Source of the DNA: Macrostomum lignano | Taxonomy: Eukaryota | Reading direction: 5' to 3' | DNA: 64,000 nucleotides | Assembly (NCBI GenBank): GCA_002269645.1 | Contig: NIVC01000132.1 | Location: 1 to 64,000, forward strand | Shown: one piece after another, positions 391 through 10,913 of the stretch | Layout: each line of letters starts with the position of its first letter | How positions within the stretch are numbered: position 1 is the first letter of the stretch | Program-made: the position numbers and the translations under genes | The notes under the pieces: generated by a model | Databases searched by the model: none | What the model was told of the DNA's origin: nothing | The model's input: the letters and a program-made list of their open reading frames with translations, nothing else

Positions 391-3300
391 TTAGGCATTG
401 CTTTTCACAATCTCTGTGTACTCGGTAGCCAAGCTGGCAGCCGACTTGTTCACTTCCTCCTGCTGCCGAGCATCACCGCTGACCTTCAGCACTTGGGCAT
501 AGACAACGTCCGGGACCGTCGCTGCTGCCTCTGTCGATTGCCGAATGGCTCGGCTCGCCGCCCGACGTCGCACCCATTCAGCAGGGTGTTGCACGTCGAT
601 GCCGCACCGCTGCCGCTATTGACGCCCCAGAGTTCGTCGTCGCTGATAGCCCGTCCAGATCTACGTTTGCGCAGTCCTTGCCCGGCTGTAGGTTGCCATG
701 GGAACCTCTGATGGCGACCAGCTGCCTCGCCTGTACTGGTCAGCTTGCGATAGGAGCACTCAGAACTGATCTCAAGCAGGCGAGCAGGAATGCCCCGCCA
801 CCGCTACGGCGATTACTGTTAGGCCGATTTTCCAGAGATCAACTCCAACTGCGAGAGTTCAATCGAGCTATAGCTCTTAATTCTTGTATTTGTAAGGTTT
901 AAGATGTCACAATCAGAGAGAGGAACTCTCTGACTAGAAAACTGCAAATGTGCGCAAATTGACTTCACTTAAACCAGATGAATAAAACTTAGTCGCTAAA
1001 TGTACTACGTGAATATCCGGGGTCGGCAAAATCCGGCCCGCGAAGCCTCTAATCATGGTTTGTGTCTACTGTTTCTTCTCAGCTCGATCTTTTCTCTCGA
1101 ATCTCCTCTCCTCTCCCTTCTTGATCAATTCTCCCAATTCTCTCCTCGTGCACTCCTCTTCTCTCCTCTCTTCTCCCTCCCCTCTGGCCCACAGTCATGC
1201 TCTACATGTAGGTTCTCTATCTGGTTCTTGAGGTAAAAAAAGTTTGCCGCGATTCCTGATGTACATGTACGTGTTATCTGATAACATCTGATAGATGCGC
1301 AACCTTGGGAATCACTCGGCCGTTTCTATTGGCAACACACACATGTAAGTCGCTATTGGCTGAGAGCAGTCAGTCACGTGACTACCATTCTGTCCAATAG
1401 CGACTTACGTGTGTGTGTGTTGCAATAGAAACGGCCAGGTGAATCCCAAGGTTGCGCCCAAGCATGTGTTATCATAAGGCCCAATGTAATAACTAACTAA
1501 TGCAGAAAGATATATAAATAAAAATATATGTCTCATGCCATGTAATACGGATATTTCAATGGCGACCCCCATACGAGCGTATGGCTGACTATCAGACTTA
1601 TTGTGACTCACAATAATCAGCACGAACCCCTTAGGCCACATGCCTGACGATTAGAAAGTGTATGAGCGCGTACAGCTAATTGGCGCGCTTACATGTATAT
1701 GTGCTCAGGAATCAGCGGCGGGCTTGTGGGGACGAAGGTCAAAGTTAGCCGCTCACCTTCACAGGCGCTGGCTGTGCCGGTCTCAAACAGTGCACTGTGC
1801 TCGGATTGAAATCTGGTTTGGTCTGCCTGATACACGGTGCACAGTATTTTCCTATCCAGAGCTTTCGCCGGAAGTGGCATCGGGTCAAAGCTCCAGGTCA
1901 GGGAGTTCAGCGAGCTGATCTCCAGGCTGCTGGCGTTTGTCCGACTCTGCAGTTGGATAGTTGATGAAATTGATCAAGGTAGGCGAGCATAGCAACTATT
2001 AATTGGTAATGCAGTAATACCCGGAAGGTCAAATGTACAATGTTCGCACAGCAAAATACTCCCAGCTGGAGCCGTATCGCAGATCCTCAGTTTCTGGGTA
2101 AGATCCTGTTTCTGGGCTACCCTAACCCTCCCCAGATGCTCAGTTGCTGGGTAACCCTAACATTCTCAGATCCTCAGTTGCTGGGTAACCCTAACATTCT
2201 CAGATCCTCAGTTGCTGGGTAACCCTAATATTCTCAGATGCTCAGTTGCTGGGTAACCCTAACATTCTCAGATCCTCAGTTGCTGGGTAACCCTAACATT
2301 CTCAGATCCTCAGTTGCTGGGCAACCCTAATATTCTCAGATGCTCAGTTGCTGGGTAACCCTAATATTCTCAGATGCTCAGTTGCTGGGTAACCCTAACA
2401 TTCTCAGATCCTCAGTTGCTGGGTAACCCTAACATTCTCAGATCCTCAGTTGCTGGGTAACCCTAAAATTCTCAGATGCTCAGTTGCTGGGCAACCCTAA
2501 CATTCTCAGATGCTCAGTTGCTGGGCAACCCTAACATTCTCAGATCCTCAGTTGCTGGGTAACCCTAACATTCTCAGATCCTCAGTTGCTGGGTAACCCT
2601 AATATTCTCAGATGCTCAGTTGCTGGGTAACCCTAACATTCTCAGATCCTCAGTTGCTGGGTAACCCTAACATTCTCAGATGCTCAGTTGCTGGGCAACC
2701 CTAACATTCTCAGATCCTCAGTTGCTGGGTAACCCTAATATTCTCAGATCCTCAGTTGCTGGGCAACCCTAACATTCTCAGATCCTCAGTTGCTGGGTAA
2801 CCCTAACATTCTCAGATCCTCAGTTGCTGGGCAACCCTAACATTCTCAGATCCTCAGTTGCTGGGTAACCCTAACATTCTCAGATCCTCAGTTGCTGGGT
2901 AACCCTAACATTCTCAGATCCTCAGTTGCTGGGTAACCCTAATATTCTCAGATCCTCAGTTGCTGGGCAACCCTAACATTCTCAGATCCTCAGTTGCTGG
3001 GCAACCCTAACCCCCCCAGATGCTCAGTTGCTGGGTAACCCTAACATTCTCAGATCCTCAGTTGCTGGGTAACCCTAACATTCTCAGATCCTCAGTTGCT
3101 GGGTAACCCTAATATTCTCAGATGCTCAGTTGCTGGGTAACCCTAACATTCTCAGATCCTCAGTTGCTGGGCAACCCTAACATTCTCAGATCCTCAGTTG
3201 CTGGGTAACCCTAACATTCTCAGATCCTCAGTTGCTGGGTAACCCTAATATTCTCAGATGCTCAGTTGCTGGGTAACCCTAACATTCTCAGATCCTCAGT

Positions 3301-9300: not shown

Positions 9301-10913
9301 AGATAGATAGATAGATAGACAGACAGACAGACAGACAGACAGACAGACAGACAGACAGACAGACAGACAGACAGACAGACAGACAGACAGACAGACAGAC
9401 AGACAGACAGACAGACAGACAGACAGACAGACAGACAGACAGACAGACAGACAGACAGACAGACAGACAGACAGACAGACAGACAGACAGACAGACAGAC
9501 AGACAGACAGACAGACAGACAGACAGACAGACAGACAGACAGACAGACAGACAGATGGATTACATTCCCCAGGCCTGGCAAACACAGTGACGGCCACCAG
9601 TCTCGCAGGCTTGGTCAGCTTTATCAGCAGCCACTGATAGCCGGAGGCGTCGGGCTCCTCTCCGGAGTGGAAGTAGTTCCAGTCGCCCAGCGATCTCGGC
9701 CGCATCATGAAGCAGTAGTCTTCGTTACCAGTGTAGACGCTCGATTGCCAGGACTGAGCGATCTGAGCCTGCTGCACCGCGATTTTGCCATCTGAGTAAA
9801 AAAGGAAATTGCCGAATGCTTCCTTTCACTCGTAGGCCAAAGCTCAGATAAAGCGCACACAGCCCAGCAGTGCGCAACAGTGCCCCTTACAGCTCCCTAA
9901 CAACAGTACCCCCTACAGCTCCCCAACAACAGTACCCCTACAGCTCTCCAACAACAGTACCCTACAGCTCCCCAACAACAGTACCCCTACAGCTCCCCAA
10001 CAACAGTACCCCCTACAGCTCCCCAACAACAGTAACCCTACAGCTCCCCAACAACAGTACCCCCTATACTCGTAGCTCCCCAACAACAGTACCCCTACAG
10101 CTCCCCAACAACAGTACCCCTACAGCTCCCCAACAACAGTACCCCTACAGCTCCCCAACAACAGTACCCCTACAGCTCCCCAACAACAGTACCCCTACAG
10201 CTCCCCAACAACAGTACCCCTACAGCTCCCCAACAACAGTACCCCTACAGCTCCCCAACAACAGTACCCCTACAGCTCCCCAACAACAGTACCCCTACAG
10301 CTCCCCAACAACAGTACCCCTACAGCTCCCCAACAACAGTACCCCTACAGCTCCCCAACAACAGTACCCCTACAGCTCCCCAACAACAGTACCCCTACAG
10401 CTCCCCAACAACAGTACCCCTACAGCTCCCCAACAACAGTACCCCTACAGCTCCCCAACAACAGTACCCCTACAGCTCCCCAACAACAGTACCCCTACAG
10501 CTCCCCAACAACAGTACCCCTACAGCTCCCCAACAACAGTACCCCTACAGCTCCCCAACAACAGTACCCCTACAGCTCCCCAACAACAGTACCCCCTACA
10601 GCTCCCCAACAACAGTACCCCCTACAGCTCCCCAACAACAGTACCCCCTACAGCTCCCCAACAACAGTACCCCCTACAGCTCCCCAACAACAGTACCCCC
10701 TACAGCTCCCCAACAACAGTACCCCCTACAGCTCCCCAACAACAGTACCCCCTACAGCTCCCCAACAACAGTACCCCCTACAGCTCCCCAACAACAGTAC
10801 CTACAGCTCCCCAATAAGTCAGGAATAAACTTACCACTACAAGCTGACATTGTAAACAGGAACAGAAGCAGAATCGCTAGGAAGCAGCGGTCAGTTGGCC
10901 GGCTACTTTGCAT
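391..10913 (-). CDS. Type I membrane receptor: signal peptide + F-type-lectin/F5-8C-like domain + 4 Ig-like (C2-type) domains + TM + ITIM/ITSM tail, ~820 aa, with frame disruptions
   Basis: Exons 5'->3': 10913-10835 (MQSSRPTDRCFLAILLLFLFTMSACS), 9791-9564 (AQSWQSSVY..YFHSG..WLLIKL..VAVTVFARPGE), 9268-9051, 7799-7311 (ISC..VLW..SYRC..ILFHV; needs one indel at CCCC 7526-7529), 6663-6473, 5916-5742, 5660-5500, 4851-4716 (AIVCQVNQ..DVLY), 4612-4476 (TGGIPPP), 1946-1757 (LDRKILCTVYQ), 848-391 (WKIGLTVIAVAVAG.. then VVYAQV, TEYTEI, stop). All junctions are GT/AG and phase-compatible apart from the noted indels; the 7799 acceptor is the least certain. Confidence 0.7.
1297..1457. repeat. 161-bp imperfect palindrome (MITE-like hairpin)
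   Basis: GCGCAACCTTGGGA..CGGCCGTTTCTATTG..GTAAGTCGCTATTGG is mirrored by CCAATAGCGACTTAC..AATAGAAACGGCC..TCCCAAGGTTGCGC, centred near the palindrome AGTCACGTGACT (1372-1383). Confidence 0.8.
2080..4400 (+). repeat. 34-bp minisatellite (~68 copies) containing the telomere-like motif TAACCCTAAC
   Basis: Unit ATTCTCAGATCCTCAGTTGCTGGGTAACCCTAAC; intron of the minus-strand receptor. Confidence 0.95.
4995..5415 (+). repeat. 22-bp minisatellite (~19 copies)
   Basis: Unit AATTCTCATACCCCAAACCCCT. Confidence 0.92.
6014..6410 (+). repeat. ~34-bp minisatellite (~12 copies), G4-prone on the minus strand
   Basis: Unit CCCCTACCATCTAGAGTTCCCCGATTCCCCACCT, with three C4 tracts. Confidence 0.92.
6846..7228 (+). 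repeat. (TAAC)n microsatellite
   Basis: Direct reading, with TCAC/TGAC/TAGC variants. Confidence 0.95.
7833..8775 (+). repeat. 54-bp minisatellite (~17 copies)
   Basis: Unit GAGTCAGTCTGGGCTGCAGGTGAGCTGTTATCAGAGTCTCAGCTAATTACAATC; it produces the spurious 320-aa ORF. Confidence 0.95.
9280..9555 (+). repeat. (AGAT)n(AGAC)n microsatellite filling receptor intron 2
   Basis: Direct reading; the intron 9269-9563 is almost entirely repeat. Confidence 0.95.
9885..10812 (+). repeat. 25-bp minisatellite (~37 copies) in receptor intron 1
   Basis: Unit TACAGCTCCCCAACAACAGTACCCC. Confidence 0.95.

Follow-up and report, generated by a model that had tools for sequence, protein, structure and literature searches.

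The window analysed here comprises the first 64 kb of contig NIVC01000132.1 (64,000 nt) in the Macrostomum lignano assembly Mlig_3_7 (GCA_002269645.1). Its minus strand carries a gene of 13 coding exons joined by GT–AG introns, running from an ATG at 10913 to the end of a TAA stop at 391. The product is very probably a type I membrane glycoprotein comprising a signal peptide, a divergent F-type-lectin-like head, four immunoglobulin (Ig)-like modules, a transmembrane (TM) segment and a tail with motifs of the immunoreceptor tyrosine-based inhibitory (ITIM) and switch (ITSM) types. An earlier reading of the DNA alone, hereafter the original prediction, had proposed this architecture, which is borne out in intact copies of the gene, its folds being predicted ones. 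The architecture is real and undescribed; the gene itself is already deposited, annotated in Mlig_3_7 as hypothetical protein Mlig034318 without characterisation. As a whole, the explanation that we favour, and hold to be reasonably probable, is that a real 13-exon gene (Mlig034318/Mlig012130) encodes a surface receptor.

Gene model and the last exon

The gene was found by provisionally joining open segments of the minus strand, which matched an 804-amino-acid hypothetical protein, P0001 (BOX15_Mlig012130g1), as well as a partial UniProt model, P0002. To set the exon borders, P0001 was mapped to the window and the splice sites were checked. All 12 introns are GT–AG, with phases 1,1,0,1,0,1,0,1,0,1,0,1. 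The head (exons 2–4) and each of the four following modules are flanked by phase-1 introns, and each of these modules (exons 5+6, 7+8, 9+10 and 11+12) is interrupted by a phase-0 intron (a 1-0-1 pattern). The phase-1 borders on every module, together with the phase-0 split in each Ig-like module, point to an exon-shuffled mosaic. From its N-terminus, the product has a signal peptide, a head of roughly 180 amino acids, four beta-sandwich modules of two exons each, a TM segment and a 127-amino-acid tail, and the translation of window exons 1–12 is identical to residues 1–651 of P0018, the protein of another assembled copy. The parts of the gene, in the order of translation, are as follows.

10835..10913, minus strand: exon 1, with the ATG and signal peptide MQSSRPTDRCFLAILLLFLFTMSACS and a phase-1 donor
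9564..9791, minus strand: exon 2, first part of the F-type-lectin-like head
9669–9667, 9654–9652, 9576–9574 and 9570–9568, minus strand: exon 2 residues H68, P73, R99 and G101, respectively
9051..9268, minus strand: exon 3, mid-head, with R106 (9260–9258) and the family-invariant Cys132 and Cys151
8858..8942, minus strand: exon 4, C-terminal strands of the head LTRFILLRRLVRDQADKIFNFVGLEIEE
7311..7804, minus strand: exons 5 (7804–7602) and 6 (7446–7311), module 1, Cys-rich and predicted to be all-beta, with a predicted local distance difference test score (pLDDT) <60
5742..6678, minus strand: exons 7 (6678–6473) and 8 (5916–5742), module 2, Ig-like with moderate confidence
4716..5660, minus strand: exons 9 (5660–5500) and 10 (4851–4716), module 3, Ig-like, pLDDT 85–93, with the highest family conservation
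1757..4612, minus strand: exons 11 (4612–4476) and 12 (1946–1757), module 4, Ig-like with low confidence
391..848, minus strand: exon 13, with the TM segment (from about 828), the cytoplasmic tail and the TAA stop (393–391), frameshifted in the window
490..507, minus strand: ITIM-type motif VVYAQV, containing Y769 of the intact protein
409..426, minus strand: ITSM-type motif TEYTEI, containing Y796, with the C-terminus eight residues on

The original prediction had given the outer limits of the gene, and the positions of both tail motifs, exactly. It counted 11 exons where we find 13, the head alone taking up three of them (exons 2–4), and the 1-0-1 split that it saw in Ig domains 2–4 is correct for these but is not confined to them, as all four modules share it. 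Gene models in Mlig_3_7 stem from a genome-guided transcriptome assembly of RNA-seq data (StringTie, TACO and TBONE) (PMC5730564), and the 13-exon chain thus rests on RNA-seq-based models rather than on ab initio prediction. This support is that of the annotation method, not of reads or transcripts of this locus, and the gene model at the window locus looks to have been mapped from another copy's transcript.

Two deposited models differ from this structure in detail. At the exon 12/13 junction (848–846 and 1757), P0019, the protein annotated at the window locus, has Gly at residue 652 (...ACEGGV); GT–AG splicing of the window DNA yields Val (...ACEVGV), as in P0018. The deposited P0019 model probably has shifted, non-canonical intron borders that arose from mapping another copy's transcript (the copy L001 has G there). 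P0002 (A0A1I8IPN1, ‘SET domain-containing’) begins with an exon at 14142–14273 on the minus strand, about 3.3 kb upstream (MQARQQDEHKEIEARQHSAKLDKCFCRRD), and lacks exon 1 (the signal peptide) as well as some of the head; probably either the prediction was mis-joined or its first exon is an alternative 5′ exon. Nothing in the sequence justifies the automatic name of P0002.

The original prediction took its exons to be phase-compatible and overlooked a frameshifted last exon: as it stands in the window, the chain is in frame through exon 12 of our model only. In exon 13 the window differs from three other assembled copies by 1-nt deletions at 792, 759, 739, 683 and 532 and a 2-nt insertion at 640, and its reading frame stops inside the TM segment at TGA 774–772 (...IGLTVIAVAVAGHSCSPA*). 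Because the net length change is −3, the segment with the ITIM and ITSM regains the starting frame, after four stops. P0019 is 676 amino acids long and ends (...VAGHSCSPA) at the premature stop; the sequence of its locus, L002, equals window 1–20913 exactly in reverse complement, and the gene adjoins the contig start.

Read literally, these changes would mean that the window copy is truly truncated, encoding a 676-amino-acid, tail-less protein that ends in half a TM segment, or that it is a decaying duplicate. The window sequence does stop at that TGA and the locus is annotated so; furthermore, the M. lignano genome is recently polyploid and rich in duplicated blocks (PMC5730564), and gene decay is therefore expected somewhere. 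We nevertheless judge this reading very unlikely in view of contig NIVC01004980.1 (locus L003, with the intact P0018), which represents the same haplotype and aligns to window 11779–1 in one block with only 2 mismatches against 29 gap openings over 11.8 kb. Ten of these 29 indels crowd into window 19–792, within 800 bp of the contig end, and the remainder are mostly differences in the length of G runs in minisatellites. By exon, the two assemblies show no mismatches and no indels in exons 1–12, and no mismatches but six indels in exon 13, at all six of which L001 and L004 side with L003. Exons 1–12 (1,954 nt) are likewise free of indels between the window and L001. At five of the six sites in exon 13, the window has lost one base beside an identical one. 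Taken together, this pattern is a technical rather than an evolutionary signature.

The assembly was built from PacBio reads with Canu and polished by Pilon with Illumina and RNA-seq reads (PMC5730564). Since the exon-13 indels come without substitutions, cluster at the end of a contig and affect a haplotype that was assembled twice, they are very probably errors in the consensus where a PacBio contig ends, and not biology, an interpretation that is strongly supported rather than proved. The true product is taken as the 804-amino-acid P0018. A reading of the indels as relaxed selection on a decaying tail, based on a density like that of non-coding DNA in the comparison with L001, was dropped because L003, of the same haplotype, shows no substitutions and six indels at the contig end. 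Mlig_3_7 thus holds one haplotype twice, and its redundant 29.6-kb contig NIVC01004980.1, which has the intact gene, extends beyond the end of the window contig into a PABP-like neighbour. The locus serves as a warning: owing to errors in the consensus near a contig end it was annotated as a truncated protein of 676 amino acids, while a redundant haplotig held the intact 804-amino-acid gene. Compared with the window, exon 1 of L004 (NIVC01001771.1), the third copy, has one indel, and the protein annotated for L004, P0020, starts MHSS...LLPF; either the variant is real or the consensus is locally wrong here too.

The window is eukaryotic in character, with short coding blocks between minisatellite arrays (periods of 34, 22, 34/95, 4, 54, 4 and 25 nt), and seven of the gene's 12 introns are mostly occupied by one tandem array each, as listed here.

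2133–4400: 34-mer, 67 units
4995–5413: 22-mer, 19 units
6014–6412: 34/95-mer
6845–7231: (TAAC)n, 97 units
7833–8775: 54-mer, 17.5 units
9281–9555: (AGAC)n, 69 units
9875–10814: 25-mer, 37 units

The lengths of the arrays vary among gene copies. The 34-nt minisatellite of 67 units fills intron 11, between exons 11 and 12, and its unit has a telomere-like AACCCTAAC stretch. Intron 12 holds a nested inverted repeat at 1297–1457, whose outer arms (35 nt) are 91% and inner arms (25 nt) 96% complementary, around a centre of 34 nt; the repeat could fold into a long hairpin or represent a small foldback element.

The lectin-like head and the Ig-like stalk

To examine the head, we modelled it on the sister protein P0001, in which one head residue differs from the window, using a 14-sequence family alignment. 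The AlphaFold2 (AF2) model (pLDDT 77; predicted template-modelling score 0.79) is a beta-sandwich, a jelly roll like that of galactose-binding domains. The original prediction had named AlphaFold and Foldseek as a check on the joined protein, and F-type lectins are indeed the best structural matches of the N-terminal domain. In the Protein Data Bank (PDB), the leading Foldseek matches are lectinolysin (4GWJ/3LE0), MsaFBP32 (3CQO) and SpX (2J1R/2J22), Anguilla anguilla agglutinin (AAA; 1K12) appearing at rank 33, and next come members of the same superfold, namely SUN, F5/8-C/CBM32, APC10/DOC and GnT-IVa lectin domains. E-values of the head matches range from 1e-6 to 1e-4, template-modelling scores from 0.5 to 0.65 and identities from 12 to 17%. 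A family profile searched against all PDB sequences matched 3CQO at 1.4e-5 (both its domains), 1K12 at 0.0097 and 3LE0 at 0.2; the sole match other than F-type lectins was CbpA (E = 0.27), which is noise. Aligned by hhalign with a small F-type lectin alignment, the family scored a probability of 79% (E 1.5e-5). In its predicted structure, the head has the jelly-roll beta-barrel fold of F-type lectins, and its sequence homology to solved F-type lectins appears weak but specific. It is best described as a very divergent F-type-lectin-like domain.

Some results pull the other way. The check by HMMER domain models, also named in the original prediction, came out negative for the head and for the stalk: Pfam-A gave no relevant match to ten raw stop-free segments (E ≤ 1) and none of its families, lectin and Ig models included, matched full-length P0001 even at E ≤ 10. 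A phmmer search of P0001 against PDB sequences returned a chance match only (E = 1.3), and the margin of F-type lectins over SUN, F5/8-C/CBM32 and APC10/DOC domains in the Foldseek E-value is only about tenfold.

The hallmarks of F-type lectins are the fold, the fucose-binding motif H-X24-R-X-D-X4-(R/K) and the cation motif h2DGx (PMC5712786). The alignments by HMMER and hhalign agree on residue register. The head contains the string H-x30-R-P-G-x4-R (H68, R99, G101 and R106), as the original prediction had read, and its two arginines bear out the corresponding part of the proposed basic triad, R99 aligning with R79 of AAA and R106 with R86, at the exact +7 spacing; the replacement of the motif's Asp by Gly is also correct (AAA D81 corresponds to G101). 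The histidine does not conform. H68 (in NYFH) aligns with AAA H47 (in NFYH) and not with the fucose-binding H52, which explains the x30 spacing in place of the canonical one. H52 (in CTH) is invariant in the F-type lectin set, and its position in the head is occupied by P73, a proline conserved in the family. AAA C82–C83 corresponds to E102–L103, and in place of h2DGx, which was not found in the head, P-R-S-L (family consensus a-e-s-l) is aligned with VDGN/IDGN. The fucose-binding motif is thus absent in register.

Deviant F-type lectin domains may have changed or lost sugar binding (PMC5712786), and the same may hold for this head. As H68, R99 and R106 are retained in most paralogues, a remodelled binding site that uses these three residues is possible. 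Glycan binding by the head is a tentative proposal, to which we give somewhat less than an even chance. The original prediction went further, to a canonical fucose-binding head with a His-Arg-Arg triad in a Siglec-like inhibitory sensor of self-glycans or of allorecognition. Fucose-binding F-type lectins are the nearest relatives of the head by fold and by profile, the R79 and R86 equivalents keep their spacing and a tail with ITIM and ITSM is present. The out-of-register histidine and the loss of D81, the C82–C83 stacking pair and the calcium motif nonetheless make this reading improbable, as such deviations imply a changed or lost specificity (PMC5712786), and the polymorphism expected of an allorecognition locus was not seen among three copies about 1% apart at the protein level (dN/dS 0.15).

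The stalk (residues 204–660, modelled by AF2 with an 11-sequence alignment) is predicted to be all-beta, with pLDDT values of 85–93 for module 3 and about 60–88 for module 2. Its best Foldseek match is ICAM-5 D1–D4 (1.3e-8 over about 420 columns), followed by RAGE VC1C2, IgM, VEGFR-1, CD22 d1–3, ICAM-1, LAG3, PirB and SYG-1. Modules 2–4 have Cys pairs spaced 39–54 residues apart. In the paralogue alignment, the first Cys stands beside a Trp-like position (G-N-P-x-P...C-W) and not on the preceding strand, which is atypical. Less favourable to an Ig assignment, modules 1 (with nine Cys) and 4 are poorly modelled (pLDDT <60), and an internal-repeat analysis detected no significant mutual similarity among the four modules; an argument for Ig status from internal repeats was dropped for that reason. 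At the level of predicted folds, four Ig-like modules are supported, firmly so for two of them (modules 2 and 3).

Both parts of the ectodomain also bear on a different explanation, in which the protein is an adhesion or recognition molecule of the Ig cell adhesion molecule (IgCAM) type, its head, no longer able to bind sugar, serving in protein binding or as a structural element. Here the tail tyrosines would be YxxPhi endocytic or sorting signals, or incidental, and the molecule could act in cell–cell adhesion or gamete recognition, a process in which oyster bindin, an F-lectin repeat protein, takes part. Ig modules split by phase-0 introns are typical of NCAM-type adhesion molecules and not of immune receptors, which have one exon per domain. 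The phase-0 intron in each Ig-like module, the adhesion molecule ICAM-5 as best structural match of the stalk and the fucose-binding and calcium motifs that are not intact all fit this explanation, whereas the conservation of two Arg and a nearby His in most paralogues suggests a binding site that has been maintained.

Tail, family and the receptor model

In intact copies, the hydrophobicity profile shows a signal-peptide peak and a single TM peak; the TM segment (residues 659–681) is followed by a basic stretch, and the ectodomain has four N-glycosylation sequons. Five tyrosines lie in the tail, two of them in motifs C-terminal to the single TM segment: Y769 (VVYAQV) fits the ITIM pattern [SIVL]xYxx[IVL] and Y796 (TEYTEI) fits the ITSM pattern TxYxx[VI]. 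As the original prediction had noted, the two tyrosines are 27 residues apart. Among 200,000 shuffles of the tail, an ITIM and an ITSM on distinct tyrosines occurred in 0.44%, and with a spacing of 15–35 residues in 0.12%, a chance figure that is unusual for one protein and not decisive at genome scale. By sequence, the tail belongs to the ITIM/ITSM class at the motif level only, and its phosphorylation and the recruitment of a phosphatase would follow by analogy. PTPN11 is listed, at the level of annotation, among the human homologues of M. lignano transcripts (PMC5946080). Inhibitory signalling through the ITIM and ITSM is a possibility that we rate below an even chance.

Several observations temper a signalling role. 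The ITIM/ITSM pair was not found in the C-terminal regions of any of the five paralogues inspected (P0003, P0007, P0012, P0015 and P0017), and the three copies that bear the motifs are too close (dS ~0.03) for their conservation to be informative. YAQV, YTEI and a membrane-proximal YRKL also fit the YxxPhi sorting signal. Paper texts and the supplements of the genome paper, searched by gene ID, yielded no expression, localisation or binding data. The differing paralogue tails and the YxxPhi fits favour the IgCAM-type explanation. Against it, the combination, order and spacing of an ITIM followed by an ITSM is improbable by chance (P ~0.001–0.004) and the tail mirrors those of Siglecs, PECAM-1 and PD-1, PECAM-1 showing in addition that adhesion and ITIM signalling are compatible. 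On balance we consider an IgCAM-type molecule somewhat unlikely, although it is the strongest competitor of the receptor reading.

Comparison of gene copies indicates what selection has kept. Four annotated proteins fall into the 90% cluster of P0001, namely three of 804 amino acids and P0019 with 676. Between the two diverged copies L001 and L003, dS is 0.030 and dN 0.0044 (omega 0.15), with 17 synonymous and 8 non-synonymous changes, of which 3 and 1, respectively, fall in the tail; head, stalk and the TM-plus-tail region behave alike. The gene is under purifying selection. Some 2 kb downstream of each intact copy, on the opposite strand, lies a PABP-like gene, an arrangement that would fit homeologous or allelic loci in a species of recent polyploidy.

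Among 1.84 billion representative proteins, scanned exhaustively with HMMER, only 16 relatives were detected; a word-indexed profile search with alignment A1 returned just two proteins, and the exhaustive scan is the informative one. All relatives and all cluster members are from M. lignano, and the family is therefore restricted to the M. lignano lineage among the proteins searched. The paralogues are 30–40% identical and have the head in common, with a variable number of downstream modules. A tblastn search with P0001 found no tandem paralogues elsewhere in the 64-kb window, and hence no gene cluster. Automatic UniProt names of the paralogues include ‘Ig-like domain-containing’ beside plainly wrong ones (SET, MATH, MIR and Mab-21); being unreliable, they were given no weight.

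In the receptor model that we favour, the head would bind an extracellular ligand, possibly a glycan though not through the canonical fucose site, and the Ig-like stalk would project it from the cell surface. Clustering on ligand would then lead to phosphorylation of the tail tyrosines, and the phosphorylated tail would recruit an SH2-domain phosphatase that damps signalling. We infer the type of ligand, the phosphorylation, the phosphatase recruitment and the inhibitory sign, and for the M. lignano protein self-glycan sensing, allorecognition and SHP recruitment are speculative. Because M. lignano is a transgenic laboratory model (PMC5730564), the receptor hypothesis is experimentally testable.

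Beyond the gene, the window contains further coding segments and mobile elements.

16871–17272: a separate RNase H fragment
26637–28429, plus strand, perhaps from about 22739: exons of a homologue of the splicing factor SF3A3/Prp9 (Pfam SF3A3, SDE2_2C and SF3a60_Prp9_C, E down to 3e-57)
36715–37422, plus strand: an open segment matching rhodopsin-family seven-transmembrane (7TM) receptors (7tm_1, E 4.5e-5, below the Pfam cut-off)
43807–44550, plus strand: a second open segment matching these receptors (7tm_1, E 4.2e-12)
50403–54347, plus strand: a long-terminal-repeat-retrotransposon-like element with a gag-like open reading frame (DUF7041) and an uninterrupted 987-amino-acid pol open reading frame (protease, reverse transcriptase, RNase H and integrase)

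The two 7tm_1 segments are probably exons of one or two genes for G-protein-coupled receptors.

Comparison with known systems

With F-type lectins, or fucolectins (AAA 1K12, Morone saxatilis FBP32 3CQO, the lectin domain of lectinolysin 3LE0 and Streptococcus pneumoniae SpX-1 2J1R), the best Foldseek matches of the head, the M. lignano protein shares the predicted jelly-roll fold, a W-x-x-x-L core, the equivalents of R79 and R86 at +7 and the equivalent of the C108–C124 disulfide (Cys132–Cys151). It differs in its low identity to them (12–17%), in having Pro for His52 and Gly for Asp81, in lacking Cys82–Cys83 and h2DGx and in escaping recognition by any curated hidden Markov model. Known mosaic proteins with F-type lectin domains combine these with CTLD, CCP and TM regions (furrowed and CG9095), or with pentraxin or FA58C domains, and not with Ig modules and an ITIM/ITSM tail (PMC5712786). 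The original prediction knew of no receptor that joins an F-type lectin, Ig domains and ITIM/ITSM motifs, and our literature searches likewise found no described family with this combination.

Gastropod VIgLs are secreted proteins with an N-terminal Ig superfamily (IgSF) part and a C-terminal lectin domain (fibrinogen-related, C-type or galectin), and are not known to have a TM segment or a signalling tail. As represented by the FREPs, CREPs and GREPs of Biomphalaria, they share with the M. lignano protein the joining of IgSF and lectin-type domains in lophotrochozoans (PMC5433772). The M. lignano protein differs from them in its reversed domain order, its other type of lectin and its membrane anchor.

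In PECAM-1, some 23 residues separate an ITIM from its partner ITSM. Proteins of the PECAM-1/ICAM type share multi-Ig ectodomains with the M. lignano protein, as reflected in the best stalk match, but have no lectin-like head and no detectable sequence homology to it.

The Hydractinia Alr allorecognition receptors offer a parallel in the way they were recognized: they are invertebrate single-pass IgSF proteins whose Ig domains are largely invisible to Pfam and emerge by structure prediction (PMC9546547), just as the lectin-like and Ig-like domains of this M. lignano-only family are invisible to Pfam and were seen through structure prediction and profiles. Some Alr tails carry ITIMs or the related activation motifs, ITAMs (PMC9546547). 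In contrast to the M. lignano gene, for which we saw neither a cluster in the window nor polymorphism, Alr genes form a polymorphic complex of 41 members whose function is genetically proven.

Siglecs (such as CD22 and the CD33-related members) have a comparable overall plan. Common to both are a type I topology, a membrane-distal head on an Ig stalk, which in Siglecs binds glycan, and a tail with a proximal ITIM and a distal TEYxEI/V-type motif, a likeness that for the M. lignano protein holds at the motif level only; CD22 d1–3 is also among the structural matches of the stalk. In Siglecs, however, a V-set Ig domain with a conserved Arg that binds sialic acid forms the head, and in its place the M. 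lignano protein has a predicted jelly-roll, lectin-like domain. The M. lignano protein is not a Siglec and lacks the motifs of a canonical fucolectin, and the likeness to Siglecs, which comes without a sequence relationship, would be an analogy at most.

We also considered whether this analogy might extend to a convergent glycan checkpoint of the flatworm lineage, in which a head remodelled around H68, R99 and R106 would sense a self or partner glycan and inhibit through the ITIM/ITSM tail and an SHP-type phosphatase. We regard this as unlikely, if slightly less so than the canonical fucose-binding version. If true, it would represent convergent evolution of glycan-checkpoint receptors outside deuterostomes. 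A head that binds glycan and a tail that recruits an SH2 phosphatase would together constitute an independent route, through a non-Ig lectin, to glycan-dependent inhibition in a lophotrochozoan, and would extend both ITIM/ITSM-type regulation and mosaic F-type-lectin-like receptors to flatworms.

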